Positions 18,901 through 53,008 of a DNA stretch of 64,000 bases are shown piece after piece. The stretch covers positions 1 to 64,000 of the forward strand of contig NIVC01001222.1 in NCBI GenBank assembly GCA_002269645.1, written 5' to 3'. The DNA comes from Macrostomum lignano. Lineage: Eukaryota. The notes under the pieces are model-generated. The model made no database searches, was not told where the DNA came from, and saw nothing but the letters and a program-made list of their open reading frames with translations. Position 1 is the stretch's first letter; each line of letters opens with the position of its first letter. A program made the position numbers and the translations under genes.

Positions 18901-18959
18901 GTCACGGTAGAATAAAAGAAACGTCATGTCAGACATGAAGGGTTCATGTAAAAATTAAA

Positions 18960-22072: not shown

Positions 22073-24205
22073 ATGATATTGAAGTTTGTCACCCACTGCA
22101 TTCTGGTCGGTGCCGCCATGGCCCAAGCATTGAATGGTGCAGGTAAGACATTAGATTAAATTTTCTAGAGATTTTATCTTTAGCCATAACATCACTGCAA
22201 GTTCTCAAATTTTTGCAGAGTACTCGACTGACCCAGTGGAGTCGCTGAACTCCACTGCTCCGATTACATCAGCTGGTGGAAGCAGCGACATTCACTGCAC
22301 TGTGCAGTGCTCGGCCGCTGGAGCCGCCGTCTGCGCCGCCACCGCCTACGTGGAAGAGACTCGGGTGTGCCTGTTCTCAGGCGTGAGCAATGCGGACTTC
22401 TCTGCTGCCGCTTCGAGCAGCACCGTCTTCCGTAGGGTGAAAGGTGCGTTGTCAATATAACGGAGAAGCAGTTATGCGCCTTTGAAGGAGCTTAGTTAGT
22501 TTGCAAAGGAGTTTCGGGTACTCACCATTTCCAATGTCCAGCTATATGCCTGAGCGCGTATGAACACTTTAGAGAGGCAACTTCTCTCAAGCAGGGTGTA
22601 GAGTTGCCCTGAATTTCTCACCTTATAGACAGTGTACACACTAGGTGCCTTGAAGGATAATTTCTGCACCCAAACCCTTAAATTGTTCACTGTAGCTATT
22701 TAAAAACTTCGATGTCTCAGTAACTTTTTATCACCGATTTTCTGCCAGGTCCCAAGCCAGATTTGGGGTACTACGTGATGCTGAATAGGACTCGTACGAA
22801 CGTGCAAATGAGTTTTGCTAGAAACTGGACAGAGTACGAAAACGGATTCGGCGATGGAATCGACGTGTGGCTTGGTGAGCATTATCTTACGTCATGGCTG
22901 CTACCACAGCGTTTTTTGTGGCTAAATGAATATTTTTGCCCGTTTTATTCGATTTTCGGTTGTCTTCGATAGGTTAGCCATACCAAGAGGCCATTTCTTT
23001 AAGATAGATTTAGGGTACTTCGCAGAGGCTGGTTTGAAATTCAAGCAGGCTTAAAATCGAGTGACACTATGATACAACGAGTGCAAATAAAATGTTTAAC
23101 TTTCAAAGATGCGTAAGAATGCGTTTTTATTGCGTCCAATTTGGTGCAGTGCATAGAGTCAGCGAGTTCATATTCACCATTGGCTAACAACTGAAATCGC
23201 CATTCAATTTGAATTATTTCACCATCATCAAACTCCAAGCCTCCAGTTACGCATGTATTCACTGTCCTATCTCTTTACTGTCCACCAGACTGACTATAGC
23301 GCACAGTCCCCTCTGCGCTATTTTTTTCTTTAGCCACGCCTTCCAGCAGTGGCCCAACTTGCTCGCAGTTAAAAACCCAATTGATTTCTGTTGTCTATGG
23401 CTTGTCCGTGTAAAATATCTGTCACATCTTAGCCTGCTGACGGCCACGCATCAAATTAACAGAACTACCAGTGGGTGGGGGCAACCGGCAATCTGACAAT
23501 TTTTTGCTGCGCCGTACATGAACTTCAAGAACACGGGCTAACTTTTTGTTGCCACCTTCTCAAACAAAAATCAAGTCGCCAGCCCTCGGGACCATCGAGA
23601 TATTCTACGATTCTGCCAGAAGGTCGGATTTTCCCATAAGCTCTAGTGTATTCACGACACCCCAGTGAGTGTATAAGCACTGCGCTTCAGTACAGCAGTG
23701 AAGAAAAAACCAAATAGGACGCAATAAGATACATTCACATGAAATGACTAATTAAAGCAATTGCTATTTTGTTTTAGGACTTCGGAGAATTCACGAACTG
23801 ACTGAAAACACGCCAAGGAAACTGCGAGTAGAAGCTGTCCTCACATCCGGTGTTCTCCACGTATACGAGTACTCCGGATTCTCCGTGGGCAACGCCAGCA
23901 CAAACTACCAAGTGACCTTTGATTCATTTTTGTCAGCCAACTCCAACGGAACCTATGATGCCATGACTTACCACAAGGGAATGCAGTTCTCAACATTTGA
24001 TAGGGACAACGATATGTCAGCATCCTCTTCATGCTCGCAGTCCAACGGTAATGTCGGCTGGTGGTTTAAAAGCTGTTACTATGCTCTTCCTACGGGAAGA
24101 ATAGAATTCTCAAATACTGATGGTGAACATGTGTTAATATTATGGGACGCCGATGGCTACATGATTTGCAACCACATTAAAATGTTATTGCTAGACCTAG
24201 ACTAG
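22073..24205 (+). CDS. PAN/apple + fibrinogen-related domain secreted protein, copy A (282 aa, no Thr linker)
   Basis: Exons 22073-22142, 22219-22443, 22749-22874 and 23778-24205; all introns GT-AG and phase 1. Signal peptide MILKFVTHCILVGAAMA; PAN Cys pattern CTVQC..C.ATAY....CLF; FReD motifs F.RNW.EYENGFG, WLG, QFSTFDRDND, GWWFKSC. Confidence 0.92.
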
Positions 24206-24577
24206 TGCGAACACGCTGGAGTCCCAAAATCAAATCACACTACTGATGTACAAGGCGACAAAGAATATGAACAAGCCCTAAAATAACTTAAAAGATTCAA
24301 AATTATTTTGATTTCAAGGCGATGTTAACGAGCTTAAAGCTTACAGGAAGGTACAAGGCGCGGAGTAATTAAAAAAATAATATTTTGGCAGACAACGCAA
24401 AGAAATAGTGGATTAAATTACAGCAAAATTTAGGTAAAGCAAACGGGGAAATTTTGGCAAAGTTTACAAATAACCTTGGAAAGTTGAATTGCAGAAAAAT
24501 TTTAGTTGCTGTTTCTTATCCGCTAGAACATTATAACTTCTATTAAATTAAAAAAGTAGAATTATACGAGCAGATAT

Positions 24578-25730
24578 AGTTACTGGCCTAAGTTCGATCA
24601 GTGCATGTTCGGACTCTAGCAAACAGTCGGATATGAATTTCAATGAGCCATTTTCCGTTCTTTTTACATGTAAATCAAGCGAACACAAAAACAGAGCAAC
24701 ACAGGCTCACGAAATTCAAGAACACGGGCTAACTTTATTGGTGCACACCTCGAACAAAAAAGTCCTTCTGCCAGAAGATCGCGTTTTTATAAGCGCTAAT
24801 GCATTCAGTACACCCTGTGTGCCACTTGCATGGCTTTGCAAGGACTTTATATTTCGTTTTTAATAACGTGTCTACATCAAATTTCTGACATCGATGTTAT
24901 CTGGCCTTTACATAGGCGGAGCTTCTGATCACCTTTAACTTTTTGAAGCTTGTGGGTATCGATGCTTGATCAACAACATTAGGCATCTGGTGTCGAACCC
25001 CTGGTCCTTGAAGTTTGTGTGCCCAACTTGTTCCAGTAAAAAACTAACTATAATTCTGTTTTCACCCAGCTATGTCCTTGCGACCGAATATCTTTAACGT
25101 TTCAAATCTTTTTAATAACGATGGCGCAGTGAAGTTTTGGGAGCCCTGCGAAATTGATATATCGCAGGTCCAACTTGAGTGTTCGGTTCGTATCGCCTGC
25201 TAATCAATGATGTACATTAATATTGGCTAGAGTTTCTTTAATCGTAGTTTTCTGGAAGTTTTTAAAAACGAAAATTTTGACGCTGAGCAAAATGATTTTT
25301 GGCTGAAATGAATAACTTAATACATGTACATGTGTTTTTTGTAGTTTCTATTCTACATGCTATTTCACTGTAATTCTGGAAAATAATTCTGCTAGATGTA
25401 ACGATTAACATATCAAAAATGCGCAATTTAAGACGTAGCAGTTTTTTTCTAATAGCATGTAGTTCCTTAAACATGAATATTTATAAACCGATGAAATACG
25501 GTTACTTTTTTACGTGCAACCGTGTCTGTTCTAAAATCGAGAATCTTGACTTTGTTTTTATGTTTCTCCTCAAAATTACTTTTAATTTAACCAGTTTAGC
25601 AAAAACTGTTGTTTTTTAAAGAAATATTCTGTACTAAGTAGTACTCCTTTATCCCAAAAATTTGCATATTACATGTATATATCTATATATATATATATCT
25701 TGCACCACCTTATTCCGTCAATATTAGCAC
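24578..25730. repeat. Diverged paralog of 945-2200 / 7260-8520 (shared 3' flank of the gene family)
   Basis: Colinear similarity from ACTGGCCTAAGTTCGATCA to TCTTGCACCACC..TTCCGTCAATATTA. Confidence 0.85.
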
Positions 25731-26024
25731 AAAATCTGATGTATCTTTCTACTTATTACTATTACTATTAACCAAAAAAAATTCTTTTAAACAAACGGCT
25801 TAAATCTCACCAGCGTTAATTTTCAAGTCTTTGAAAGCTTCGTTAATTTGCAGCAAGAATTGAGAAGTCACAGAGAAGCAGTACAGCCACTCACAGCTCC
25901 ACAAGGCCAAGGGAGTGAGGTTGAGGGCAAGGGACCATTGTTCCAAAGTCAGGAGCTACGAAGACCAGTGCCCAAGCGGCCCTGTCGTGGGTCAGTACAT
26001 GTACATGTAACCAGTACATGTAAG

Positions 26025-26100
26025 TCATGGGTCGGCAAACTCCGGCCCGTGAGCCACATGCAGCCTGAAAAGCTAATTCTCTATTCGGCCCTCGGGTCTT
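26025..26100 (+). mobile_element. Remnant left end of a hAT (Charlie-like) MITE; a second copy lies at ~32238-32310
   Basis: GGGTCGGCAAACTCCGGCCCGTGAGCCACATGCAGCC resembles hAT-Charlie 5' termini (CAGGGGTCGGCAAAC..GGCCCGCGGGCC). Confidence 0.45.
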
Positions 26101-26678: not shown

Positions 26679-28743
26679 ATGATATTGAATTTTGTAATCC
26701 ACTGCATTCTTATCGGTGCCGCCATGGCCCAGGCTTTGGATGGTACAGGTCAGACATTCGATTTAGTTTCCTAGAGATTGCATCTGTTGTGTCTCGACCT
26801 AATGGCCGCTGGACGGGTCAGGGTTCGGGTCCTCCCGCCTAAGACACCCCGGTCCCAGCCCTCTACCCTGTCACGTTATTGGCGTAGTGGCTATGACCCT
26901 TAAGAGGGCTGTTTTAACGAGAGTTGTCGTTGTAGTCCAAAAGGAAGGTTAATTGAACAATGGCGGTGTAGCGGTTTCGTGTAGCGGTAGCACTTATTAA
27001 TAGACCGTTGGTTAAATTGGTTGTGGTATTGGCTTTTATATTTTTCTCAAAATAGTAATAGAATTACAGAGGCGATAACAGTATGGGCACTGGCGGCTGC
27101 AACAACGAGTTAATGATAAGATGAGTAGACGACGAAGGATGGCGATGAGGCAATGGCAGTGAGTAGCGGTCGTGAGTAGGCAGAACGGTAGTGAGCTGGC
27201 GTTAGCCGTGGTAGAGTCAACTTGGCGGGAGAGGCGTGAACAGTCTGGCTGGCGAGTGGAGCCGTGGCGAGAGAAGGAAAACGAGAGAGCGCAGGGAACA
27301 CTAAGTGAGAGGGCCAAGAGAGCAAAAGTGGAACGCCAAGTGAAGACCCCCCAGCCCATAGATAAAGTATACTTTATCTATGCCCCAGCCCGCCGCCAGG
27401 CGGGGGTTACTAAAGAGCGCAGAGGGCTAGCATAATACACGCGGAGAGTTTTCATTGGCTGGCGGGAGAACTTGAAATTATCGATCATGCTAAATTTTAC
27501 AGACGAACGCAAGGCCTACCAAATACACAGTGAATTAGCAATTGATACAGATTATTTGCACGCTACTACAAGTAAACGTAAAAATAAACTATTGGAGAAA
27601 TTTAAATGAGAAATTGCAAGGGAAACTATAGTCCAACGGCCCTTTTGCGGGACCACCTTAAACTAGCAACGTCACAACCCCGGCTACTCGCTACGCGCCC
27701 TTCGCTCGGCTCGGCGAGAGTTCGCCGGACCGACCACCCTGAGATCAGCGAGTGTTCACCGGTCCCAGGTCCCTACCAGCTCCCGGCCCCACGCGGCAAC
27801 CCAGGAGAAGAAAGCACGCGCTCACCTCTGCGTTACAGACTTATTCGCGAAGCGTTTATTGGCGAAGCGTTTATTGACACGAAGCAGAATAATCAGCGAT
27901 TGCGGGAGTCACGAGTTATTAGCTTGCAGAGAGCAGTTTTGCAGAGGGACGCCGACGAACGGGATAGAATACAAACAAAAAGAACGCTCAGGGCTAGCCC
28001 TTAAATAATATTTACACAAAAAGGGGGGAGGGGTGGGGCAGAATGGAGAGGGCGAGCCAAACCCTGGGGCCTAGCTAGCTTATCAGCCAGCCAGCCAATA
28101 CGAGCAGCCCCAGGGTGAGGCGGGCAAAGAGGGAGGGGGTAGGGTCAGCACCCAGATTGGACAGAAGTTGGGCCGGGGGCTGGGTGCAGAAAGGGGTAGG
28201 CCAGGGTTAAGGCTTACGCCTCTCACAAACCCTGGCCCTGGCGCGAGACGGGGGACCGGGCGGGGTAGCAAGAAAACTGAAAACACAATCACTGGAAGGG
28301 CGCAGCCCAACACATCTTTATACGATGGCATCAATGCAAGTTCTCAACTATTTGCAGAGTACTCGACTGACCCCGTGGAGTCGCTGAACTCCACAGCTCC
28401 GATAACATCAGCTGGTGGCAGCAGCGACATTCACTGTACTGTGCAGTGCTCGGCCGCTGGAGCCGCCGTCTGCGCTGCCACCGCCTACGTGGAAGAGACT
28501 CGGGTGTGCCTGTTCTCAGGCGTGAGCAATGCGGACTTTTCTGCTGCCGCTCCGCGCAGCATCGTTTATCGAAGAGTGAAAGGTGCGCAAGTGTTAGGTT
28601 TCGGGGCTTGTTTGAGTCAATTTTCACAGGCAGATTGGTTACTTAGTACATTTTTATTGTAACTGGAACTTTAGCTAATTAAGTGATTTTTTGATGCACA
28701 ATTAACAGTAAATCTGAATAAATGCTTTTCTTCAGAGGAATTG

Positions 28744-28774
<31 letters not shown>

Positions 28775-28836
28775 CTACATCAACAACAACAACTACTACT
28801 ACTACAACTCCTGCCCCCCTGAAAGGGTACGGATAA
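26679..28836 (+). CDS. Copy B: signal peptide + PAN/apple + Thr-rich tail; FReD deleted (131 aa)
   Basis: Exons 26679-26748, 28358-28582 and 28736-28836 (..TTTPAPLKGYG*). The DNA after the stop matches the 3' flank of copies D and E. Confidence 0.82.
26785..28312. mobile_element. Solo LTR (1528 bp) in intron 1 of copy B
   Basis: TGTTG...CAACA termini with a perfect 4-bp TSD CATC (26781-26784 and 28313-28316). Removing it restores an intron colinear with the 76-bp intron 1 of copy A. Confidence 0.9.
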
Positions 28837-30980
28837 TGATTTGATAGACGCAAGATTTTCGCAACCTATTCCCCAATAATATCTTATTTTGGCGCGCACT
28901 ATTATTATTATTATAAAACTATTTGTTATTATAATTTATAAAACTATATCTGCGGATTTCAGTCAGTCCAATCCTACCCTAATTTTACTCTAATCTTACA
29001 GGATATACTTTGTCCACTTATGATCCCTACATTTATTGGCGTTACTCTTGCACTTATCAATCTAGCGTTCGACTGTATTTGATCTTGCAGACACCAAATT
29101 TTTAGACTTGCTCGAAAGATTTCTGCACTCATAAGAAGTGGAGTTTCAAGTCTGAAAAAAATTTACACTTGTCAAGCACTCACCCAAACAACTTTTTGTA
29201 TCTTTCAGCAGCTTAAAACAAATAAATATTTAACAATACTATATTACAATCTATTTTTACGCTCGTATATTCTTCGTACTCGTCAAAAAGCAAGATTTTC
29301 TGGCTATCAGCGTAAGTAGTAGTTAATGCAATCGTTTATCCTAAACTGTATATCATAAGTCCTAGATTATAAATCGAAATCCGAAATATATCATTATATG
29401 CTATCAAAAATACGCAATCTACAATAGATCGAAATGTTTAATGAATCCACTGTTTGATCACAGTTGCCGATTGAATTCGGTTAAGTTTTAATGTTGTTAT
29501 TATTATTACTTATCATTTTTTTAATTCTATTAGCAATTACGGAATACTATGCCAATAAATTCAAGATCGCATAGATTGGTAATTGTTCAATTGAAATAAA
29601 TGAGTGTGTGACGTTCTTGCAGGCGAGCTTGAGTGCAGACGAACTACACGTACAAGGCAGAAGTATAGCAATCCCAATTATAGTTGGGCATGTCCAGATC
29701 GAGATGCAATCTGAGACTAGTAGCTCATACAAGTTTAATGCCATGTAGTTCTACGAGAGAACTACATGTAACATTCAGCGTGCGCGGGCAAGGGGCACTC
29801 GGCAATAAAGCTAAACAGGAAACCAAATTTGAATCAGACACACCTCTGAAAATAGATAAACAAAGTTGTAACCCAATAGAAAAATACGAGTATATGACCA
29901 AAACAAATATAGCTTTAAATATCTATTCCTAGCTTAATCCTTACTAAATCCAATTAGAAACCTGTAATATACAATCAGCGGAAATTCTGCTCATTCTGCT
30001 GAATCCTGAGCACATTACATGTAGAAGAGCACCAATACTCCAATACTGTATACAGGCACGCACTCATGCACACGCACACATAGGGTGTACAGCGGCCCAG
30101 AATTTCTAATCGTCATGGGGTCGTGAAAGCACTAGTTTCTTTGTATTTTTATCTATATCTTGCACCACCTTACTGCGTTCATTTTAGCACAAAAACTTAT
30201 GCATCCTTCTACTTGTCATTATTATTAACCGAACAAAATTCTTTTTTAACAAAAAGCCTTAATTTTACCAGCGTTAATTCTCAGTCTTTGAAAACTTTGT
30301 TAAATTGTTCTCTGGCTTTGTTTTTTTATTCACCCAACACTCAGTTTGCACACATTTATTTCTTTTAGCGGTTACAGCGTGTAGCCAAATGTGCTCGCAA
30401 TTCCTGACGTACATGTACTGAATAATGTTTCTGAAGCCAGGAGACTGAAATAGCTACTATTACGTAGCAGCAAGAATTGAGAAGTCACAGAGCAGCAGTC
30501 ACAGCACTCACAGCTCCACAAGGCCAAGGGAGTGAGGTTGAGGGCAAATGACCATTGTTCCAAAGTCAGGAGCCACGAAGAACAGTGCCCAAGCGGCCCT
30601 GTCGATCTGGTAGTTTCAGCTGCTTGAGATGGGAGTTCTTATACTAACCTATGTGAGAGCAAATTTTATCCAAAGAGAAAAGTTTTCAGCATCCCCTGCA
30701 AGTCTGCCTTGCTTTAAAAGCCTCAGCTGACTCTAAAAAACACTGCTCAAGACGTTACTTATGCTGCGGCTACATCTATTAGAACATGCGGGTAAAATTA
30801 AAATGCATGAATTATTCTGTAGTCGCTTTTGCACGACTACAAAAGAGTCATTTATTTCGCACGATCAATGGAAAGGAAATCCAAGATCAGATGGTTAAAA
30901 AAGTTTGCTTTCACAAAAGAACTCAGGGTAAAAATGTTGCTTCAAGTTCTTTTATTCTTGCAACGGCAGCACAACCAATA

Positions 30981-32031
30981 CCTGCAGTGACCAATGCCTG
31001 CAGTGACCAATGCCTGCAGTGACCAATGCCTGCAGTGACCAATGCCTGCAGTGACCAATGCCTGCAGTGACCAATGCCTGCAGTGACCAATGCCTGCAGT
31101 GACCAATGCCTGCAGTGACCAATGCCTGCAGTGACCAATGCCTGCAGTGACCAATGCCTGCAGTGACCAATGCCTGCAGTGACCAATGCCTGCAGTGACC
31201 AATGCCTGCAGTGACCAATGCCTGCAGTGACCAATGCCTGCAGTGACCAATGCCTGCAGTGACCAATGCCTGCAGTGACCAATGCCTGCAGTGACCAATG
31301 CCTGCAGTGACCAATGCCTGCAGTGACCAATGCCTGCAGTGACCAATGCCTGCAGTGACCAATGCCTGCAGTGACCAATGCCTGCAGTGACCAATGCCTG
31401 CAGTGACCAATGCCTGCAGTGACCAATGCCTGCAGTGACCAATGCCTGCAGTGACCAATGCCTGCAGTGACCAATGCCTGCAGTGACCAATGCCTGCAGT
31501 GACCAATGCCTGCAGTGACCAATGCCTGCAGTGACCAATGCCTGCAGTGACCAATGCCTGCAGTGACCAATGCCTGCAGTGACCAATGCCTGCAGTGACC
31601 AATGCCTGCAGTGACCAATGCCTGCAGTGACCAATGCCTGCAGTGACCAATGCCTGCAGTGACCAATGCCTGCAGTGACCAATGCCTGCAGTGACCAATG
31701 CCTGCAGTGACCAATGCCTGCAGTGACCAATGCCTGCAGTGACCAATGCCAATGCCTGCAGTGACCAATGCCAATGCCTGCAGTGACCAATGCCTGCAGT
31801 GACCAATGCCTGCAGTGCCCAATGCCAATGCCTGCAGTGACCTATGCCTGCAGTGATCATTGCCCTTGGAGTAAACAATGCCTGCAGTGCCCAATGCCAA
31901 TGCCTGCAGTGACCTATGCCTGCAGTGATCATTGCCCTTGGAGTAAACAATGCCTGCAGTGCCCAATGCCAATGCCTGCAGTGACCTATGCCTGCAGTGA
32001 TCATTGCCCTTGGAGTAAACAATGCCTGCAG
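30981..32031. repeat. 16-bp minisatellite CCTGCAGTGACCAATG (~48 perfect units) followed by three 72-bp higher-order units
   Basis: Period of 16 up to ~31750. CAGTGATCATTG recurs at 31851, 31923 and 31995. Confidence 0.97.
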
Positions 32032-33532
32032 TGGTCATTGCCGAGTGATTTTCCAGTAATCAGACAGCCTCATGCGATTGCCAAAAGCTTACAATCAAAG
32101 TAACGCCGTCTGGTTTTTTTTAAACAGCGTTACAGGGCGCGTTTCTGGGTTTGGGGCGAACGTCGGCCGTGGGTGTTCGCCTGTGTTGGAGGTGCTGCTG
32201 CCAACGATGCACTGAACAATAGTATATGAACCAGTAGGCCAGGGGTCGGCAAACTCCTGCCAGGGGGGGGGGGTCACATGCAGCCTGAAAAGCTTCTATC
32301 TCCAGCCCTCGGATCTTTTGAAACTTCACAATAGCAATCCGGCCCACTCGGGGTTTGCGCCTCTTCTCAGCTCTCCCCTCTTCTCTTTTCCCTCCCCTTT
32401 CCTCTCTACCCTCTTCGTTTCTCTCTTTCCTTTTCTCTCTTCCTTCTCTCTAATCTCTCTTTCCCCTCTTCTCCTCCTCCATCCTTTCATATCTCATCTC
32501 CTCCTTTCTATTCTCTCTATCTATTCTCTCTTCTCTCTCTTCTCTATCTTTTCTATCTTGCAGTTTGCAGAGACGGATTGCATCTGCACTGCTGTTGAGC
32601 CCCAGCAGCCCAGAGAAGGAGCTGCTCAAACAGTGACAGATCCTTGAGGCTGTGGAAATGGGGGTTGAGTGACAGGTGATTCCATTGTTTTTGAGTTTTA
32701 GGAGCGAAGAAGAAGCGCGGAGGCCTAGCAAGTTCATTGGTTTTCCGAGCTGTTGTTGTCAGCACTCGTACGTAGGCTTTGAATCCCCTAACCACCAGTT
32801 GCAACAGCAGATTCTTCCTACAGAAAGCCAGCCTAAGTAAAAGTGTCCAGTAAAAAGTTAAAAAACAATAAGGGGATCCAAAAGAGGCGCGGAGTTGAAG
32901 AAAGCAGAGGTTCATTGTTCCAGAGAGACGGGATCGGGTTGGAAAACTGGATTTGCTGGCTTCATACCCCCAGGTGGCAGCTGCTTCCCACAGAAAAACT
33001 GCGAGGCCCTCCCCTCCTTTGGAAGCCATGCAGCTCTGGAAATCCTGAAAAGAAACTGGTGAAGCTAAAACAGCTTCACATTTACTCATTACTCCCAACT
33101 ACACCGACTAGCTGCCTGGTGCATGAAAGATTCAAAGCTCCACTGTTGGCTTTTTACGCGACTCTTCAGCGTCCATGCTCTGTCGACTGTGGCTGAGCTA
33201 TTAAAACAAAGGACTAGCTATAAGACAATAGGATTGCTAGGAGATGCAGAGAGCGCCAACATGGGATGAGGGTGGGTGACACTACGAGTTAAGAGTCAAA
33301 GTCAAGTTTGGCAAGAAAATAGCCTCAGCTACTGTTGCTGCGCTAAAAACACGTTGCTAAGAGACGCAATGCTCAGATCCTAGGGCAGCTCCAATGTCTG
33401 AGCATCTGGCAGGCTGTTTGAGCGGCATTTGTGGCAGGGCATAAATATGAGTGAGCTGCTCCTCCGGGTGAGACGCTGCCTGACCGAGACATTCAAGAAT
33501 CCAGAGCTCACTGATAGACTGAATCTCCTGAC

Positions 33533-36500
33533 ATGATTCGCGAAATTCTTCTCGCCTGCGCCTTGGTCTGCGCTGCTGCAGCGAGTGACCTTGACGGCAC
33601 AGGTAACAGCTTACGGTGACTCATTTATTTTCCAATTGTAAAAATTCAACGCGAAGGTGAACAAAAATTCGTTGCAGAGTACTCGACTGACCCTGTGGAG
33701 TCGCTGAACTCCACAGCTCCGATAACATCAGCTGGTGGAAGCAGCGACATTCACTGCACTGTGCAGTGCTCGGCCGCTGGAGCCGACGTCTGCGCTGCCA
33801 CCGCCTACGTAGAGGAGACACGGGTGTGCCTGTTCTCAGGCGTGAGCAATGCGGACTTCTCAGCTGCCGCTCCGCGCAGCACCGTCTTCCGAAGGGTGAA
33901 AGGTTCGCAATTGCTGGGTTTCGGAGCTGATTTCATTCAATTTTTATAAGTGGTTTGGCTATTCTGTAGGACCCTTTTGTGGCAGCTGATACATTAGTTA
34001 CGACAGACGTCCGCAAAGTAGTGTTATTTTTCGTGTTGCGGACATTTGGTAAGTTGCACTGACACAAGTTTGGTGGCGTTCAAAAGCGACAAGCTTTTTT
34101 AAAAAATTATTTAAACTTCAATCAATTTGAGTTTATATATCAAGAGATATGTGTATTTAAGTATAAAAAGATCGGTCATTGACTTACAGAACCTATAGAC
34201 ACCTAAGCTGTCTCGGCAGAACAACTGTCTAAAAAAAGTATCGATTGCCACTGAGCAGAATGCTAATTTTAACAGATATTTGAGCTTCTGAAAGTCTACG
34301 AGCAATCTCCCTCTACGAGAGCGCGTTAGTCATGTTAGAGAAGAAACTTGCCGCTTTCAAACGACACCAAACTTGTGTCAATGCAACTTGCCAAACGTCT
34401 GCAACACGTAAAAGTAACACTATTTTCCGGAATACCTTTAGTTAGTTAGTTAGTTAGCAGGGCGGTCCGAAGACGCAGCGGGTAGGCGAGCGTCGCCCAT
34501 TCCGCTAATCCCTGAAAGACCCGCATAGGCTAGGGCGCGGGGCCAGTCAGGGAGGTCTGCCGGTCCTGTCTGCAGCGTTGTCTTCGGTGGGGAAGACGGA
34601 GGCTCGCTTGGTGGCCCGGAGGAACCGGATGAGCCGTGGGATATTCTCGGGCCGGCAAGCGTCGTCCAGGGACGGGTTGGGCCCGAGGTGGTTGAGCCGG
34701 TCTCGGTTGAAGGCCTAACAGTAGCAGACAAAGTGCTTGGCGTCTTCGTTCTCTAGGTTGCAGAAGGGGCAGAGTTCGCTCCGGCGAACACTTCGGAGGA
34801 AGCAATGCCTGGCAAAGCAACCGTGACCTGTGAAGGTCATAATGAGAGCCCGGATATCTTTTCGATTTTTGTTCAAAAGGATTCTCCGCAGCTGGAGGGA
34901 CAGATTAGGCACTGCCGCACGGAATTGGCGGCAGTTGGAAATGCCACCCCATCTGCGCAAGTGCAGGATGTCCGCCCAGCCGTTAATCTGACGATTAATG
35001 ACCGTAGCGGGGATGGGAGCAGAGGCACGGGGCCAAGGAGCGAGCCAGAACTACCCGCCTTGGCGAGGGAGTCGGCGAGCTCGTTACCTCTGAAGCCGGC
35101 GTGTCCTGTGATCCACGTGAGCCGGACGGAGTTTCTCCGAGCCAGCTTGTTGAGCTGCCCGATACAGTCGCGAACTGTTCGGGAGTTCGTAGTGGTGTGA
35201 CAAAGGGCCTGCAAGGCGGCCTGGCTGTCAGAGTGGTAGAAGATTCTGTTGTCCTTGAAGTCCCTGCAATGGAGCTCAGCTGCACAGGAGCTGATGGCAA
35301 ACTTCATTCTGGAAGACGCTGGAGAGTCTGCCAGTGTGTTGGGCGTGAGTGGCGATCACGCGGCCGTTGATAAGGATGCAAACTCCAAAGTCAGATATAC
35401 CGTCTTTGGAGATCCGTCAGTGAAGCAGTGAGCCTCCTGAGGGGCCCAGCTGTCGTCGGCGTTTTCCCTAGAGGGGATAGTGACCTTGAAGCGTTAGTAG
35501 AGATTGAGGGAGCGCGGCTTACAATCCGAAAGGACAGCCGCACTCCTACTCTCCTCCAGAACTTCAAGGCACAGGTCAGAGTGCGGCAGGAACTTGCGCT
35601 TCGCCATCGCTCTTTGTGGCTTGAAGCTAACGCCAGCCTCGATGAGCCGGCGGGTAGTTTTAGCAACCTCGCGACGGACGAAGATGTCCAGGGGCGGGAG
35701 GCAGAGGAAAGCATTGAGGCCGTCAAAGGGTGCAGAGAGCGGGGCATTCAGGATCATGCGACACGCACGTCCCTGCACCTTTTTGAGGGCTTCGTGGCAG
35801 GTTTTAATCTGCAAAGCGCTGGTCCAGACCAGGCCGGCGTAAGTAACGGCCGGCCGGACCATTGCGGTATAGATCCACCAGAGCCGCTTCGAAGTGAGGC
35901 CCCAGGTGGTGCCGACGGCTCTGCACAACTGCGCAAGAATCGCGAGGGCTTTTTTGGTTTTGGCCTGAACGTGGGTGGACCAGCTCAGCCTGTGGTCGAG
36001 CGTAACGCCGAGACACTTGGTTTGCTTGCAGGATGGGATTTCCACCCCCCCCCCCCGTAAAGCTTTAGTGGCCGAATACGCAGTTGACCCTGTGAACATG
36101 ATCGCGACAGTTTTGGTCTCAGAGAGTCTGAGGCCGCATCTGTCCGCCCATTGTTCAGCAGAGCGAATAAAGTTTTGTAGAAGATCCCTAAGGGTTTCAG
36201 GTGACGGTCCGGATGCCACGGCTGTGACATCATCGGCGTAACCGACCTTAAGGATGGGGTCAAGATGGCTGTCCCTAAGGAGCTCATCGATGACCATGTT
36301 CCAGAGAAATGGAGAGAGAACACAGCCTTGGGGCTGCCTTTGCAGACGGTTACCGTCCGTTGGTGGCCCAGCAGGTGCGCGGTGGCAGTACGGTGGCTGA
36401 TCGTATACATGATCCACCGGGTGAGGTGCGAGTGGGTTCCTCTAGCACGAAGAGCTCTGTCAAAAGCCTCAAAGAGGACATTATCGAAGGCTCCAACAAT

Positions 36501-38291: not shown

Positions 38292-38745
38292 CAGGCACCA
38301 AATTATTAGACTGCCTCAAAGATTTCGGCACTAACAAAAACTGGAGTTTCAAGTTAAAAAAATATAGTTACTCGTATAAAGCAATCATTTTAACAACTTT
38401 TTGTATCTTTTCTATTCGCTAAAACAGTCGCTGAAAAGTAAAACGTCTATTTTTATTATACTTTTCTCCTAATATATTAATCTTTATACTTTCTAGAAAG
38501 CTGTTTGATAAAAAGCAAGATATTCTGGCTTATCTCCAGTTTATTTTATCCTAAATCCTAAGTCTTAAATATAAGTTATTAAAAAATTCACAATAAAAAA
38601 TTGCTCGTAATTTTTAATACGAGCATCCTTTTGATTAAAGCTGAATCCCATGGCATCGACATATTAATCTTCCATTAATGCCTTCTTGGGTTGTTAGAGG
38701 TTGAATGTGAAAGAAAAGTGTCATGTTCCTTTTCAAATAATCTAA

Positions 38746-42013: not shown

Positions 42014-43925
42014 GGCATTCTTTCGGATGACGATCACCTGAAAAGTGACGATCACCAATGTAAAAGTTCTGGGTAATTGAAATTGAAAGTAAGAAAGCGA
42101 GTCAAACAAATAGTCCAGAAATTAAAAAACCCAACATTGGGGCTATCAGTCGTGAATCGTGTATTTCGTAGTAACCGCCACGTGTATTAAATCAATTTCG
42201 GATGGAATGATCGTCTTCCGAAACTACAGCTTGGCAATTCTAGAAAAAAATTAGTGTCTCAAAGTTTAACATCTAGTGAACGTAAGTCAGTTTCGGAAGA
42301 CGATCATTTTAATATGAAGGTAGCCCTGAAATGATCGCGTTCCGAAAGTACAGAGTTTTTATTGTCTTAGGAGCAGTAATCATTTCATTCAACAGACAGA
42401 CGTTCAAAGTTGAGGCCAAAGAGGCGCTCATCCAAAACCCGTGGAGCACCATCCAAGGGGTAGACGTGCTTTAAGTCCTGGAAGAACTCATGGACGAACT
42501 GTTTCATTTCTTTGTTATGGTGGGAGCGGTACATTAGCTCGACTAGGTATGAAGCGAAGTGTAGTGCGCTAGTTCCACGCATGTTCTTAAATTTGGCTTT
42601 TGCAGTACCCCAAAAGCCCTCAATGCGATTCGTGTGTACGTCTTTCTTCTCGCCATTTCGTTCAATAGTCGTCTTAAAGTGCTCTTTGTGGCAGACAACC
42701 CAGTGACTGTAACCCATGTGTTCCAAGTCAAGGTAAGCAGACCAGCCGTCGCTGAATACAGTCGTTCCGGGGAGAATGAACTTCTCAATTAAAGGTAGAA
42801 GAGTTTCTTTTGACCTGTTTTCAACAGGCCAAATGACAGTACGGCCATCGTGTCTGTCTGTCATGCCGAAAATCCAAATTTGTTGGCCCAGTTTCGCACC
42901 TCGGTTATATTTCATCTTTCGGCCAAAGAGGGACTCATCTATTTCAACGATGTGTCCGACACCGCCAAGAGAGATCGTATCTCGACGTGTCTTGAACCAT
43001 TCACACATTACGTCTCGAATGAAGTGGCCCCATTGCACGGCTGCCTCCGCTTCAATGCCGTACATGGCGCGCAGTGAACTGTGGGTTATAATATGGATGC
43101 ACCCCCCCCCCTCAGTTTCGGAAGGCGATCATTCTTAATGTAATTTGTACATTGTAATGATCGTCCACCGAAAGTACATGGCTTACCTTTGCGGAGTGTT
43201 CAGAAGATAACCAATGCAGTACCCAATGATGTCCATTGGATTCAGTTTAAAATTCTCGAAAAAAGTTCCCCTTCTAATGGAGACTCTTTTTTCATGTGCT
43301 CCAAATGGCGAACCAGCTCCCTTCTTGCACCGGAACACGACGCCGTCTGTCGAATTATGGGCCTTGACAATGTTCATTGACGATGCACAAATAGGGCAGG
43401 GCATGGTTTCCGGAAGCAGTCCTTCTCTTTGAAGAAGGCCAATCCAGTTTTCAGCTGTAATAAAGCGCCATGACATGGGACACACCAGTTCCTCGATATG
43501 CTCCAGTGGCTTCAAATCAACAAATGAGCCGGCACGTTCAATTTTCCGTTCTTTGGCAGGTTTTGAGCATGCCATAGTGAGTGCTACTGAAATATGAGAA
43601 AGAAAAGCTGTAGTTTCGGATCACGATCATTTGTATTCAAAAGTATCATTGAAATGATCGCATTCCGAAACTGATTATATACACGTCCATGACAGAAATA
43701 ATGCTATTGATGTTGCTGGTTTTAAATTGGAAAGTTTCTCTGTTTTTCTGTGGTTTCGGATCGCGATCCTTTCTATTCAAAACTTATATTGAAATGATCG
43801 CCTTCCGAAACTAATTATATAGTTGCCGTTTTACCATGATTTCTACAGCACAGTATACCATTTTCATAGGTGATCGTCAACCGAAACTTGTAAGAAACGG
43901 AATGATCGTTATCCGAAAGAATGCC
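42014..43925 (-). mobile_element. Full-length Merlin (IS1016/IS1595-related) DNA transposon, 1912 bp
   Basis: 23-bp TIRs GGCATTCTTTCGGAT(G/A)ACGATCA (22/23 match) and a perfect 8-bp TSD CACATTCA (42006-42013 and 43926-43933). The empty site is visible upstream of copy E (~50495). Confidence 0.95.
42385..43575 (-). CDS. Merlin/ISXO2-like DDE transposase, two exons (43575-43187, 43078-42385), 360 aa
   Basis: Zn-ribbon CPIC..RC, SIRRGTFFE, VEIDES (D), VFSDGW (D), HTNRIEGFW (E). A 108-bp GT-AG phase-2 intron joins the two ORFs in frame. Confidence 0.88.
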
Positions 43926-45242
43926 CACATTCACTCATTGCAAGCTGTGTGAATGATAGACAAATTACTCCAGACTACACCAACTAGCTAGGCCTGCTGA
44001 GTCGCATCAAACCTCCACTGCTAGCTTTTCACGCGTCTCTTCAGCGTCCATGCTCTGTCGACAGTGAGGTGAGCTATTAAAACAAAGGACTAGCTACAAG
44101 ACAATGGGACTGCTAAGAGATGCAGGGAGCAGCCAACGTGGGATTGGGGTGGGTGACACAAGGAGTTAAGAGTTGATATTACGAGCGTATTTGGCAAGAA
44201 AATAGTCTCAGCTACTGTTGTTGCGCTAAAACACGTTGCTAAGAGACGCAATGCTCAGATCCTAGGGCAGCACCAATGCCTGAGAATCTGGCAGGCTGTT
44301 TGAGCGGCATTTGAGGCAGTGCATAAATAGGAGTGAGCTGCTCCTCCGGGTAGAACACTGCCTCACCGAGACATTCAAGAATCCAGAGCTCACTGATAGA
44401 TTGAATCTCCTGACATGATTCGCGAAATTCTTCTCGTCTGCGCCTTGGTCTGCGCTACTGCAGCGAGTGACCTTGACGGCACAGGTAACAGGCTTACGGT
44501 GACTCATTTATTTTCCAATTGTAAAAATTCAACGCAAAGGTGAACTAAAAATTCCTTGCAGAGTATTCGACTGATCCTGTGGAGTCGCTGAACTCCACAG
44601 CTCCGATAACATCAGCTGGTGGAAGCAGCGACATTCACTGCACTGTGCAGTGCTCGGCCGCTTGAGCCGCCGTCTGCACTGCCACCGCCTACGTGGAAGA
44701 GACTCGGCTGTGCCTGTTCTCAGGCGTGAGCAATGCGGACTTCTCAGCTGCCGCTCCGCGCAGCATCGTTTATCGAAGAGTAAAAGGTGCGCAAGTGCGG
44801 GCTTCATTCACTTTTTATGGGCAGTTTTTTTCATACTGTCGGCTCTTTTTTGCAACTGATACTTGAACCACGACGTGTGTCCGGAAAATAGTGTTACTTT
44901 TACACGTGTTGCGGACGTTTAGTAAGTTGCATTGACACAACATTGGTGTCGCTTAAAAGTGGCGATTCATTTTTTTAAATGACTTGAACTGCGATTTTTT
45001 TATATATGAAGATATACGTGAATTTACAGTACAAGTAGATCGGTCATTGACTTACAGAACCTGTATACGCACGAGCTGTCTGGAAAAAATTATCGATTGC
45101 CACTGAGCAGAATGCTGATTTCAACAGTTATTTGAGTTTTTGTAAGCCTACGAGCAATCTCCCTCGCTCAAGTCCTGTTACCCCGCGTACGCTTTCCAAC
45201 AATTTGCCAAACTTCCGCAACACATTAAAGTGTAACAAAGTC

Positions 45243-45464
45243 TGTGTGGCTTGCAGAGAGGAAAAGCTTAGAGCCGGCCAAGCCTAGCTCTCTCAATAAA
45301 TACCAGTTTATTTTCCAGCCTGACTAGGCTGACCAATCAGCCGCTACCTCTGGCGTGTTCGCGCTCCAGAGAACGCACATGCGCGAGTACAATCCGAGAG
45401 AGAGAGAGAGAGACAGCCCCCCATCCCCCACTCTGCACAGAAAGCTAAACGCAGTCACCACACA
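45243..45464 (-). mobile_element. Short solo-LTR-like insertion (222 bp) in intron 2 of copy D
   Basis: TGTGTGG...CCACACA termini; flanks AAGTC/AAGTA (5-bp TSD with one mismatch); absent from copy E; minus-strand AATAAA at 45306-45311. Confidence 0.62.
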
Positions 45465-46009
45465 AAGTATAACACAATTTTCCGTACAACCCTCATAATT
45501 AGCTGATTGATTAATGCAGAATTATAGTAAATCTTAATGGATACTTTTTCACGATTTTCAAGATAAATTGACAACAACAGCAACAACAACAGCAACAACA
45601 ACTGCTCCTACAACTTCTGAAACTGCAACTACTACAACTACTCCTACTCCCGGATACCATGTGATGATGAGTCGTACAGGACTCACACTGAGCTTTGCTC
45701 GAACTTGGACTGAGTACGAAAACGGCTTCGGCGATGGAGTGGACATGTGGCTCGGTGAGACCTACGAGAGTATTGGTTCAACAGAAACAGTTTTAACCTA
45801 CGAGTAGCTTATTTTAGTATTAAAATATTATAACATTAATTTTCCTAAAGTCCTGGTGACGAAGCGCCGAAAGATGTACTTACCATCGACCCCTTAGCAG
45901 CGCTGTGACTTTTGATGTATGTTATGATGACTCATATGCCGACTTATAGGTGAGTAAAATTTTAAGTAGCATGAATTCTTCAAATGATGATTCATATTTT
46001 TATTAAACC

Positions 46010-46258
46010 TGCCCCAATGGGCAGATGTGCAACCGACAGCTCAGCTCTTGCGCGGCGCATCTGAAGGCTGCGTACGGCTGTTCAGTCCAAGGATGCATGG
46101 GGTCGCCACATACACCTTCAATCACCTTTGAATTGTGAACTGAAGCAATGCAGGGTTAAGTGTCTTGCTCAAGGACACAAATTGTTCCTACTAGTAGGTC
46201 GAGAATCGAACCCCCGACCTTTCAGTCGTAATTGCGACGCAGCAACCACTAGGCTACA
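46010..46258 (-). mobile_element. CORE-like SINE in intron 3 of copy D (same position as in copy C)
   Basis: Same A box, B box and core sequence as 37515-37760. Confidence 0.8.
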
Positions 46259-47729
46259 ACCCCTAGTAGCTAGGCTAGTTTACATGGAACAGTCGCTATA
46301 GGACTTTTTGAGTTTCAGATCTTCTATCAAAATCACTTGATTCAGGTTTAAAAAAAATACACGAGCTGACTGGGAGCACGCCAAAAAAGCTGAGAGTTGA
46401 GACTGTGTCCACCACTGGCATTCCATACGTCGATGAGTATTCCGGATTCTCCGTGGGCAACGCCAGCACCAACTACGTCATGACCTTTGATGCTCGATTG
46501 ACGGCCAGCTCAAACACAACTGGCGACTCGCTCACCTATCACAAAGGCATGCAGTTCTCCACCATGGACAGGGATAACGATCTAAGTAGCTCGTCTTGTT
46601 CTAATGGCTATGCGAATGCCGGCTGGTGGTTTAAAAGCTGTCAGCGTACTCTTCCAACGGGAGGAACCTTCTCGTCTTACAATCCCTATATTCGTTGGCA
46701 ATACGCTGGTAATTTTCTAGTGGCTATTCGATTGCTGCTGATTTAAATCCATTTTAGCTTGAATTTGTTACTCTGAAGACCGGGAGTGCTTTGAATGCAC
46801 ATACGCTGTTGGTTCTGTAATATTTTGGTTCAATTAAAATTTCTTTCGCGAATACCATTGAGATGGCGGCGTAAGTTTTTCGCAACCTCACCTATAGCTT
46901 ATTTTGGTGGTGCACTAACATAATCTATAAAACTAAATCTGTGGATTTCAGTCAGTCCAATCCTAACCTAAATTTACTTTAATCCTACAGGAGACACTTT
47001 CTCCACTTACGATCCTTTATTAAACATTAAAATGTCAAATGAAAATCGATAGTTAGCATTTATCGATCTAGCATTCGTCTGTATATAAGTTTTAAACCGG
47101 ACGCCAAGTTAGTCGACTGTCACAAAGATTTCAACACCAACAAGAACTGAGTCTGAAAAAATAATTTTTACAAACTATTAAGCAATAATTTTAACAACTT
47201 TTTTGTTTCTTTTCAATTTGCTAAAATAGCCGCTTAAAGATCTATTTTGATATAATAAAAATCTATTTTTATTATATCCTTCTTTTAATTTTTTCTGAAA
47301 TCTCTAGAAAGCGATTTTCTAAAGAGCAGGATCTTCTGGCTTATCCAAATATACTAAATCTCTAATATCCTATACTAAATCCTACATATACGTTATCAAA
47401 AAACTCCACAATCTAAAATATCAATAGATCGCAATTTCTTTAACGAGCATCTGCTTTATGAAAGCTGAATCCAATCCTAACGTTGCTTTTTAAGATTTTT
47501 ATTTTGTCATAGTATAGCGATTGTCGTTTAGAGAAAAATACCGAAAATCACTGCTGCATAGAATATGCAACGACCTTTTGTTAAAGTGGGCAACCAGTTA
47601 AAGAGATCCAAGCCTTAACTGAAACTATAGGCTTTGTGAAATATACATGTAGTAAAAAAAGTAGTAAAAAAATATAATAAAAATAATAATAATTTCAGAT
47701 AGGCCCTCATGCAGCGCCTTGGGCGACTT

Positions 47730-49755: not shown

Positions 49756-50030
49756 TATTTCAAATTACTTTTATAGTCCTGTGAATAAGCGACATCGCAT
49801 ACTTGCCAAGCTGTACTTCCCAAGTTGCAGTGCATGTGCCGCAGACCATACTTTGAAAGTCATATAGAAAGTAGCGAGAAACATATAAAACTTTCCAAGT
49901 TACCAGCAAAGCCAACATTGAGTAGCTACGCGTCGTACTTTAAAAGCCAATCCAATACAAAGTACCAGTGCTGACCTTGAAAGTTTTCAACGCTTTTTTG
50001 CAATTCTAATTCTTTTTTTAGAATTCTAAT

Positions 50031-50326
50031 GAGCCCGGCGCAGAGGCAGCTCCTGGGGAGGAGCTGCGGGCAGGCCCGGGACCGACCCCTAACCCCGACT
50101 TGGCGTGGCAACCGAGAGGGTGGATGCGTGAGCCGGCCCGCACAGAAGGACAGTGAACTGAGCTCCCCCAGATGCTCTAACGCAACCAGAGTAATCCGCT
50201 AAGTCTAACCGTCCAGCCCCCGCCTCCGTAGTTACGGGCTTGTCTAGTGCTGTTTTAATTGCATGCGCTGTGTTGTGTAAACCCCGCCGTCGTTAGGAAA
50301 GCGTCGTCCGCCAGTCGCAGCAGCAG
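50031..50326 (+). mobile_element. GC-rich ~300-bp insertion, probably a retroposon 3' fragment
   Basis: Abrupt GC island ending in (GCA)n, flanked by ATTCTAAT (50023-50030) and ATCCTAAT (50327-50334). Confidence 0.4.
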
Positions 50327-50939
50327 ATCCTAATTCCAAAAGAAAGCAGAGGTTCATTGTTCCAGAGAGGCGGGAGGGTGGGCAAAATGAATTTGCATGC
50401 TGGCTTCATCCCCAGATGGCAGCTTGGCTCCCCTTTGGAAGCCATGCACCTTTGGGAATCCGGCAAAAGAAACTGGTGAAGCTAAAATAGCTTCACATTC
50501 ACTCATTGCAAGCTGTGTGAATGATAGACAAATTACTCTCGACTACACCGACTAGCTAAACCTGCTGCATCGCTTCAAAACTTCAAAGCTGCACTGTAGC
50601 TTTCGACGCAACTCTTCAGTTTCCATGCTCTGTCGACTGTGGGTGAGCCATTAAAACAAAGGACTAGCTACTAGACAATGGGACTGCTAAGAGATGCAGA
50701 GATGCAGGGGAGCAGCCAACATGGGATTGGGGTGGGTGACACTAGGCGTTACAGTAGGAGTCTTTGCTAAGACGTTGCTAATTAAGCGACGCAATGCTAA
50801 GATCCTGAGGCAGCTCCAACGCCTGAGCGGCATTTTGAGGCAGGGCATAAATAGGGGTGAGCTGCCCCTCCGGGTAGAACGCTGCCTCACCGAGACATTC
50901 AAGAATCCAGAGCCTCACTGATAGACTGAATCTCCTGAC

Positions 50940-51896
50940 ATGATTCGCGAAATTCTTCTCGCCTGCGCCTTGGTCTGCGCTGCTGCAGCGAGTGACCTTG
51001 ACGGCACAGGTAACAGCTACGGTGACTAATTAATTTACCAATTATATAAATTCAACGCAAAGGTGAACTAAAAATCCCTTGCAGAGTATTCGACTGACCC
51101 TGTGGAGTCGCTGAACTCCGCTGCTCCGATAACATCAGCTGGTGGCAGCAGCGACATTCACTGCACTGTGCAGTGCTCGGCCGCTGGAGCCGCCGTCTGC
51201 GCTGCCACCGCCTACGTGAAAGAGACTCGGCTGTGCCTGTTCTCAGGCGTGAGCAATGCAGACTTCTCTGCTGCCGCTCCGAGCAGCATTGTTTATCGAA
51301 GGGTAAAAGGTGCGCAAGTGCGGGTTTCATTCACTTTTTATGGGCAGTTTTTTCATACTGTAGGGCCTTTTTTGGTAACTGAGACTTGAACCACGACGTG
51401 TGTCCGGAAAAAAGTGTTCCTTTTTTGTGCCTCTGACGTTTGGTAAGTTGCACTTTGGTGTCGTTTAAAAGCGGCAATTTACGAGCTATTTGTTTAAAAT
51501 GAATCGAATTGCTATTAATATATTTTTATATATTAAGAGACACTTGTTTTTAAGTACAGGGAGATTGGTCATTGAAGGTGAGGTGAGAACCTGTATACGC
51601 ACGAGCTGTGAGGAAAAAATTATCGATTGCCACTGAGCAGAATGCAAATTTCAACGGATATTTGAGTTTCTGTAAGTCTACGAGCACTCTCCCTCGCTTA
51701 AGTCATGTTACCTCGCGTACGCATTCCAACAACTTACCAAACTTCCGCAACACAAGTATAACACAATTTTCCGTACAACCCTCATAATTGGCTGATTGAT
51801 TAATGCAGAATTATAGTAAATCTAAATGACTACTATTCCACGATTTTCAAGATGAATTGACAACATTAACAGCAGCAGCAGCAGCAGCAGCAACAA

Positions 51897-51929
<33 letters not shown>

Positions 51930-53008
51930 TTGCTACTACTACTCCTACAACTTCTGCAACTACAAATACTACTCCTACTCCTACTCCCGGATACCATGTG
52001 ATGATGAGTCGTACAGGACTCGCACTGAGCTTTGCTCGAACTTGGACTGAGTACGAAAACGGCTTCGGCGATGGAGTGGACATGTGGCTCGGTGAGACCT
52101 ACGAGAGTATTGGTTCAACAGAAACAGTTTTAACCTACGAGTAGCTTATTTTAGTAATAAAAGATAAAAACATTTAAACATTTGTTTTCCTTAAGTCTTT
52201 GTGACGAAATATTTAATAACTTACCATCGACCCTTTAGCAGGGCTGTGACTTTTTTTTATGTTATGATGACTCATATGCCGACTTAAAAGTGAGTAAAAT
52301 TTTAAGTAGCACGAATTCTTCAAATGATGATTCATATTTTTATTACACCTGCCCCAATCGGCAGATGTGCAACCGACAGCTCAGCCGCAGCTATTGCGCG
52401 GCGCATCTGAAGGCTGCGTACGGCTGTTCAGTCCAAGGACTCTAACCATGCACTAGGCTACAACCCCTTGTATATTAATTTACTTGTAACAGTCGCTGTT
52501 TGACTTGTAGACTTGTACTAAAAGAAGACATTTTTAATCGCCACAGCAAGCCTTATGCTTATCCAATCTTGCATCAAAATCACTTGATTCAGGCCTGAAA
52601 AAAATAAATGAGCTGACTGGGAGCACGCCAAAAAAGCTGAGAGTGGAAACTGTGTCCACTGCTGGCGTTTCGTACGTCGATGAGTATTCCGGATTCTCCG
52701 TGGGCGATGCCAGCACCAACTACGCCATGACCTTCGATGCTCATTTGACGGCCAGCTCAAACACAACTGGCGACTCGCTCACCTATCACAAAGGCGCTCA
52801 GTTCTCCACCATGGACAGGGATAACGATCAATCGCCCACTTCTTGTACCTCGCAATACGGCAATGGCGGCTGGTGGTTTAAATCCTGTTTTCGTACTCTT
52901 CCCACGGGAGGAGCCTACACAGCGTCCAACGGGGCGATCGTCGATCCCTTCATTCGCTGGATACACGCTGATGAACTTCAACAGGCTATTCGATTGCTGC
53001 TGATTTAA
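50940..53008 (+). CDS. PAN/apple + Ala/Thr linker + FReD secreted protein, copy E (316 aa)
   Basis: Exons 50940-51009, 51085-51309, 51852-52091 and 52593-53008; GT-AG, phase 1, open frame. Confidence 0.92.
52350..52462 (-). mobile_element. Internally deleted copy of the intron-3 SINE in copy E
   Basis: Keeps both SINE ends but lacks the core and the B box. Confidence 0.7.

Follow-up and report, generated by a model that had tools for sequence, protein, structure and literature searches.

Proteins that carry both a PAN/apple domain and a fibrinogen-related domain (FReD) are already known from molluscs, and FReD gene families that are clustered and partly decayed have been recognized before. 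One FREP of Biomphalaria glabrata, an FBG protein, has been described as carrying PAN_AP at its N-terminus (PMC5440852; PMC7588048), and PAN/Apple has been noted in 'some Lottia gigantea FReDs' (PMC7588048). Here we describe a locus of related composition in the flatworm Macrostomum lignano, consisting of five gene copies (A to E) at positions 22073-53008 of a stretch of 64,000 nucleotides (assembly GCA_002269645.1, contig NIVC01001222.1, positions 1 to 64,000 of the forward strand; hereafter the window). A first-pass annotation of this DNA had proposed a family with the order signal peptide, PAN/apple, mucin linker, and short FReD, and had suggested that this architecture might be unreported. 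The order was upheld by Pfam searches, a family profile, and a structural model, although the Thr-rich linker does not occur in A. The suggested novelty was not upheld, given the Biomphalaria and Lottia proteins, and the M. lignano relatives already carry automatic names in UniProt. We read the region as a lineage-specific tandem array of genes for small secreted lectin-like proteins in M. lignano, whose most likely function, by analogy with characterized FReD proteins, is calcium-dependent glycan binding; for this reading as a whole we estimate a probability of about 0.6.

The proteins encoded in the window resemble the mollusc PAN-FReD proteins in being secreted, in having an N-terminal PAN/apple domain and a C-terminal FReD, and in being encoded by clustered genes accompanied by partial copies (PMC5440852; PMC7588048). 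However, PAN and FBG are separated in the Biomphalaria protein by an immunoglobulin superfamily (IgSF) domain and an interceding region, neither of which is present in the window proteins, and the window FReD, unlike that of the mollusc proteins, is without its first 37-45 residues. In Pfam searches, no Ig-type domain was found in the products of the intact genes A, C, and E even at E ≤ 10, and no collagen, epidermal growth factor (EGF), or coiled-coil region was found in the window proteins, whose linkers have no Gly-X-Y repeats. Because IgSF, collagen, EGF, and coiled-coil regions are all lacking, the proteins are neither FREPs nor ficolins in the strict sense, gastropod FREPs having one or two IgSF domains ahead of FBG and ficolins a collagen-like stretch ahead of the FReD. 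An exhaustive search of 1.84 billion representative proteins with a profile of the exon 2 domain of this family matched just 20 proteins, namely the Macrostomum family and true multi-PAN_1 proteins. No mollusc PAN-FReD protein was among these matches, and the sole mollusc protein, P0026 from Bulinus, combines PAN with an F5/8-type C domain. Since no sequence relationship between the flatworm and mollusc proteins was detected beyond the shared domains, the pairing may have arisen independently in the two groups. A PAN-like region together with a full-length FReD was also seen in an environmental protein (P0012).

Using gene A as the query, tblastn and blastn detected a 225-nt exon 2 five times in the window and the FReD-start and FReD exons four times each, and A-type exon 1 was matched in A and B. 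All five copies lie on the plus strand, with start codons at 22073 (A), 26679 (B), 33533 (C), 44415 (D), and 50940 (E) and with the stop codon of E ending at 53008, exactly as first annotated. Gene models read from the sequence have four exons in A (22073-24205; exons 22073-22142, 22219-22443, 22749-22874, and 23778-24205; 282 residues), C (33533-38291; exons 33533-33602, 33678-33902, 37100-37267, and 37891-38291; 287 residues), D (44415-46746; exons 44415-44484, 44562-44786, 45563-45754, and 46346-46746), and E (50940-53008; exons 50940-51009, 51085-51309, 51852-52091, and 52593-53008; 316 residues), and three in B (26679-28836; exons 26679-26748, 28358-28582, and 28736-28836; 131 residues). 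Exon 1, which encodes the signal peptide, has 70 nt and exon 2 has 225 nt in every one of A to E, while the length of exon 3, which encodes the linker and the start of the FReD, is 126 (A), 168 (C), 192 (D), or 240 nt (E). The introns are GT-AG and the junctions phase 1 throughout, so that the shared phase-1 exon modules recognized earlier were confirmed. A TATA-like box is conserved within each promoter type at 92-122 nt upstream of the ATG, and the intact genes A, C, and E each have their own TATA-type promoter.

Every strong protein match to these sequences is an uncharacterized M. lignano protein that was named automatically, as 'Apple domain-containing' or 'Fibrinogen C-terminal domain-containing' in UniProt. 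These relatives (e.g., P0002 and P0016) share the architecture, the intron positions, and a tandem arrangement at other loci, and are 43-73% identical to the window proteins over the full length, although many of the database models are fragments or fusions. In particular, the annotated homolog P0002 (BOX15_Mlig012238g1, locus L001) has introns at the same positions and in the same phases, including the 70-nt exon 1 and a split in 'WLG|L'. This agreement is the best support for the junctions short of RNA sequencing, the gene models being predictions from the DNA. The P0002 locus, which is in the same assembly, also contains two further copies nearby, one complete and one partial (8097-9098 and 13592-13759); tandem PAN-FReD arrays thus exist at other loci. 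Over exon 2 of C, P0016 ('Apple domain-containing protein', A0A1I8H7W8) shows 100% identity, and it reads through into a C-type intron. No identical full-length match was found for A, nor for C when compared with P0001 (E was not among the queries). Four UniProt predictions, P0001, P0007, P0019, and P0021, look mis-merged rather than like real architectures, the fusion partners being the N-terminus of an amiloride-sensitive channel (PF00858), each other, and, in P0021, retroelement-like sequence; the P0019 model contains three FReDs and two PAN domains.

Exon 2 encodes a module of approximately 75 residues with four cysteines. Although the window proteins scored only 13.3-16.7 bits (E 0.007-0.07; gene C, E 0.054) against Pfam PF00024 (PAN_1), for which the curated cut-off is 21.4 bits, the M. 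lignano paralog P0019 passed it with 25.2 bits, and P0020, P0002, and P0004 reached 20-21 bits. The multi-PAN_1 proteins matched by the family profile, whose PAN_1 content was verified with Pfam, include P0025 (7.3e-8), P0026 (1.6e-6), P0030 (1.2e-4), and P0032 (2.5e-4). A word-indexed search with a profile of the PAN domain returned just three M. lignano fragments, and true PAN domains were reached only by the exhaustive search. In a sequence search of the PDB with the family profile, residues 20-59 of the plasminogen PAN domain were the top match at a marginal E of 0.05. The cysteines C27, C31, C39, and C51 are invariant and align with the core cysteines of PAN domains, which form two nested disulfides. 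An AlphaFold model of the domain (predicted local distance difference test score, pLDDT, 80.4) has the order beta-beta-alpha-beta-beta-beta, and its Foldseek matches in the PDB with a probability of at least 0.9 are solely PAN/apple domains, those of plasminogen, the N domain of HGF, and the SML-2 lectin of Sarcocystis, with TMq about 0.64-0.67 for the best matches. The lower-ranked matches, such as leech anti-platelet protein (LAPP), MIC4, and factor XI, are mostly PAN/apple as well, and the model thus points to the fold that had been proposed for exon 2.

The third, outer disulfide that joins the first to the sixth cysteine in apple domains sensu stricto is absent from the exon 2 domain with its four cysteines. 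Compared with the N-terminal PAN modules of plasminogen and HGF and those of the apicomplexan PAN/apple lectins SML-2 and MIC4, the exon 2 domain has the same four core cysteines with the same spacing and a similar predicted fold (TM about 0.64-0.67), but it is marginal in sequence (PAN_1 13-17 bits; PDB profile E 0.05), and it is fused to a FReD, whereas the known modules are fused to kringles, proteases, or further PAN repeats. Because the family profile matches, the paralogs at or near the Pfam cut-off, the aligned cysteines, and the AlphaFold and Foldseek results agree, we consider the assignment of exon 2 as a four-cysteine PAN module to be sound at the level of sequence and model. Its four cysteines place it with the plasminogen/HGF type and not with the six-cysteine apple domain, so that of the original label PAN/apple the first part holds, at sub-cut-off PAN_1 scores, and the second does not.

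The C-terminal domain was recognized much more readily. Pfam PF00147 (Fibrinogen_C, curated cut-off 22 bits) matched A, C, and E with 111.7-119 bits and E values of 6e-32 to 4e-34 (A, 6e-33, profile positions 42-201 of 221; C, 3.5e-34; E, 5.9e-32). The matches begin at profile position 38-42 of 221 and reach approximately 210, and alignments with PDB chains begin at residue 46-57 or so, which agrees with the earlier description of a short FReD. The missing N-terminal part includes the disulfide of subdomain A, and no cysteine pair precedes subdomain B. A complete FReD of approximately 220 residues is therefore not present, and the identical truncation was found in all Macrostomum paralogs examined. 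The best relatives in the PDB are tenascin-R/C, ficolin-1/2, FIBCD1, angiopoietin-like proteins, and MFAP4. The four copies that retain the FReD (A, C, D, and E) all keep the calcium loop, FST(M/F)DRDND, and the pocket disulfide, C-x13-C around GGWW or VGWW, and both elements align to those of tenascin, ficolin-2, and MFAP4. The DRDND-type calcium loop and the disulfide-braced pocket at GGWW are shared with ficolins, FIBCD1, and tachylectin-5A. In contrast to these lectins, the window proteins have no collagen or coiled-coil region for oligomerization, are missing the disulfide of subdomain A together with the N-terminal stretch of that subdomain, and have a loop after the NxxG motif that is 3-4 residues shorter. 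Modeling of full-length C with AlphaFold from the single sequence gave a pLDDT of 36.7 and no usable structure.

Between the two domains lies a linker that is rich in Thr, or in Thr with Ala and Pro, and is encoded by ACN trinucleotide repeats. The repeat-encoded part has 0 residues in A, approximately 18 in C, and approximately 45 in E, where it is longest and Ala/Thr-rich. Thr runs occur in the linkers of B, C, D, and E, but A has only 'GPKPDLG', so that its product consists of a signal peptide, PAN, a short non-mucin linker, and a short FReD; the Thr-rich tract that could correspond to the mucin linker first assigned to the whole family is present in four of the five copies. The products of A, C, and E each have a cleavable signal peptide.

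Although all five paralogs exist, not all of them are intact, and not all retain the FReD with which they had been credited. In B, an internal deletion corresponding to 37165-38188 of C removed approximately 90% of the FReD, leaving the signal peptide, PAN, and the Thr-linker in a frame that ends '...PAPLKGYG*'. The deletion spared the tail of exon 4, and a remnant of its last 29 or so codons (TLSTYDPYIYWRYSCTYQSSVRLYLI) is therefore found at 28985-29087 on the plus strand, 79% identical to 38189-38410 of C. D is open apart from an in-frame TGA at codon 58 in the PAN exon (44663-44665, plus strand), where the other four copies have GGA (Gly), and because of this premature stop it is probably a pseudogene. 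The TGA may be a sequencing error, since one sequence is the basis of the reading; we also considered selenocysteine and discarded it, as no supporting evidence was found.

Two further deleted copies had been noted upstream, and both were confirmed on the plus strand: stub 1 at 645-905 (ATG at 875, with TATAAATAG approximately 117 nt before it) and stub 2 at 6960-7224 (ATG at 7192) are 93.5% and 95% identical, respectively, to 21844-22105 at the 5' end of A. Each consists of the A-type promoter, the 5' untranslated region, and the first 31-33 nt or so of exon 1, and then jumps to sequence homologous to the 3' flank of A (978-2195, after stub 1, matches 24597-25730 at 71%). Since the A-type 5' end runs straight into 3'-flank homology, the gene bodies have been deleted. 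The two stubs are copies of each other and belong to a segmental duplication of 6.3 kb, in which 1-6588 matches 6301-13017 at 94.8%. With B deleted, D interrupted by a nonsense codon, and two stubs, only three of the seven copies (A, C, and E) are intact.

The exons of the array have diverged to very different extents. Exon 2 is 89-95% identical among the five copies, with synonymous divergence (dS) of 0.13-0.25, while exon 4 of A is saturated relative to C, D, and E (dS 1.7-2.2), and the similarity between A and these three copies is lost no more than a few bases from either end of exon 2. B is a mosaic of A-type sequence upstream and C-type sequence downstream with a crossover in exon 2. E is D-like outside a C-like tract of approximately 440 bp, a gene-conversion tract that spans the 3' end of intron 3 and the 5' two-thirds of exon 4 (52440-52882, plus strand; 93.7% identical to 37742-38180 of C) and in whose intronic part the identity is 0.97 between C and E and 0.41 between D and E. 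The contrast between exons 2 and 4, the abrupt loss of similarity, and the mosaics in B and E point directly to unequal recombination or gene conversion. We also considered an overlapping RNA element as the cause of exon 2 conservation, but no Rfam or tRNA match was found, and recombination explains the conservation better because B and E are demonstrable mosaics.

The ratio of nonsynonymous to synonymous rates (dN/dS, or omega) is 0.08-0.19 for exon 2; for the 5' part of exon 4 it is 0.07-0.26. In comparisons of A with C, D, and E, omega is 0.07-0.19 at dS 1.7-2.9. Purifying selection on exon 2 and on the 5' part of exon 4 is clear. The 3' part of exon 4, which encodes the pocket loops and the C-terminus, is the most variable (0.26-0.86) and exists in distinct A, C, and D/E versions with dS of at least 1, whereas the adjoining 5' half has been homogenized. 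Because the sequences are so few, positive selection cannot be claimed. The array has evolved through tandem duplication, unequal recombination or gene conversion with the conserved PAN exon and parts of exon 4 serving as homology, transposon insertion, and decay; the duplications, mosaics, stubs, deleted B, and nonsense D bear out the birth-and-death character that had been ascribed to the locus.

We next consider what the products may do. If they act as secreted calcium-dependent lectins, the FReD would bind acetylated or other glycans with calcium, as do ficolins, FIBCD1, and tachylectin-5A, the Thr-rich linker would be O-glycosylated and serve as a stalk, and the PAN module would provide a second binding or oligomerizing surface. 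The proteins could then work as soluble bivalent lectins that agglutinate or opsonize, or as lectins held in mucus on the gut or epidermis, and the paralogs, which differ at pocket residues and in the C-terminal half of the FReD, would have different specificities. The most likely setting, judging from other FReD families of invertebrates, is defence, and an immune role, for which the first-pass annotation used the label "pattern-recognition", is plausible. A more elaborate version, in which a flatworm-specific recognition repertoire arose independently of mollusc FREPs, PAN takes the structural place of the N-terminal part that the FReD has lost, the half with the pocket is shuffled among paralogs by gene conversion in the germline, and trinucleotide-repeat slippage sets the length of the linker, all of which together would create binding diversity, seems to us an unlikely combination.

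Several points weigh against the lectin reading itself. Family resemblance is what supports the lectin and defence roles; of the seven copies, four are defective; the PAN_1 scores of the window domains are below the cut-off; and the alignment used for modeling the PAN domain held true PAN domains, a possible source of bias. In addition, the residue after the second pocket cysteine, which is a His in the acetyl-binding pocket of FIBCD1 and tachylectin-5A, is His only in C, while A has Tyr, D has Gln, and E has Phe. Of these four copies, all except A retain the Tyr at position +4 from the first pocket cysteine, so that C keeps both residues as in the acetyl pocket of FIBCD1 and tachylectin-5A. 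Since the pocket His is kept only in C, acetyl-group binding is not assured for every copy, and since part of subdomain A is missing, folding and oligomerization may differ from those of characterized FReD lectins.

Among the alternatives, the one that survives best is that the products are structural or adhesive proteins of mucus or matrix, in which the PAN and FReD ends cross-link the animal's own glycoproteins and the stalk adds to the gel, with no recognition of microbes. The solved FReDs closest in sequence are those of the matrix proteins tenascin-R/C and MFAP4, with scores similar to those of ficolins, PAN modules often mediate protein-protein contacts, the linkers are mucin-like, and a secreted phospholipase A2 gene and a Thr/Pro-repeat open reading frame (ORF) adjoin the array. 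Nevertheless, these small proteins with single modules have been highly duplicated and vary in their pocket residues, a pattern that a soluble lectin repertoire fits better than a matrix scaffold does, and no multimerizing coiled coil or collagen region was found in the window proteins; we therefore regard this alternative as doubtful.

A still less probable alternative is a reproductive family acting in seminal fluid, the egg shell, or sperm-egg interaction, the turnover of the array being driven by sexual conflict and not by pathogens. Macrostomum reproductive proteins are known to evolve fast, and the confinement of this family to M. lignano in the databases searched, its rapid copy turnover, and its faster-evolving C-terminal half would suit such a role. 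However, FReD proteins have been linked mostly to defence or matrix, and none of the papers retrieved on Macrostomum fibrinogen, FReD, ficolin, or lectin proteins ties this family to reproduction or to any other function. Finally, the two stubs, internally deleted B, and nonsense D among satellites, a retroelement, and a DDE transposase could suggest that the array is mostly debris, decaying amid repeats, and that the copies still open matter little for function, but this is improbable, as the frames of A, C, and E are complete, their splice sites are canonical, and their promoters are retained, and dN/dS is well below 1 even at saturation. A secreted calcium-dependent lectin thus remains the function that we favor.

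The surroundings of the array are rich in repeats and mobile elements. The 6.3-kb duplication at 1-13017 is mostly a G-rich satellite of 14-15-mers (GGGGGGTAAGATTC; 3735-6942 and 10153-12960) and also contains (GTCT)n arrays (2202-2619 and 8528-8973) and a 20-mer repeat, with a GC skew of up to 0.77. Further satellites upstream of A (13458-13636, 14069-15361, 15895-16358, 18555-18904, and 20398-21295) comprise a 20-mer (AAGAGACAGGGGCGCCCACC), a 25-mer, (TAGA)n, and a 23-mer, with long spurious ORFs on both strands, and a 16-bp satellite of approximately 65 copies (ACCAATGCCTGCAGTG; 30974-32033) between B and C contains long artefactual ORFs on the minus strand. The 3.2-kb intron 2 of C holds a retroelement fragment on the minus strand (34873-36417; Pfam RVT_1, E 1.7e-13; RNase_H, E 1.3e-8). 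Between C and D, also on the minus strand, an ORF with an ISXO2/IS1595-like DDE transposase domain (42385-43065; Pfam E 1e-24) stands next to a Cys-rich ORF of 130 residues with no Pfam match (43183-43575), and the pair probably makes up a DNA transposon of eukaryotic type. A short stretch resembling a tRNA ('...gaatcgaacccccga...ctaggctacaacccc') in intron 3 of C (37690-37775) and D (46250-46270), at which neither ARAGORN nor Rfam made a call, is perhaps a tRNA-derived short interspersed nuclear element.

Directly downstream of E on the opposite strand is a two-exon gene for a secreted phospholipase A2 (54956-56178, minus strand), with Phospholip_A2_1 matched by Pfam on both ORFs and a signal-peptide-like start at 56178. 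Beside it, a 27-bp tandem repeat of approximately 23 copies (56335-57086, minus strand) forms a Thr/Pro-rich 'LQEPTTFTN' ORF with no Pfam match that may encode another mucin-like secreted product. Farther downstream, an uninterrupted ORF of 327 residues (58634-59617, minus strand) encodes a DHHC palmitoyltransferase (Pfam E 8e-26).

Taken together, the locus does not define a new category of molecule but a lineage-specific family that joins PAN to a truncated FReD, with a lectin function that we infer. Little has been described of the molecules that serve innate immune or mucosal recognition in free-living flatworms, and the immune receptors of the phylum are almost unknown. M. lignano is a transgenic model amenable to RNA interference, in which a compact PAN-FReD lectin family of this kind would be an accessible system. 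It would allow one to ask how FReD repertoires diversify beyond molluscs and arthropods, whether a FReD can fold and bind without its N-terminal subdomain, and what a PAN module contributes beside a lectin domain.

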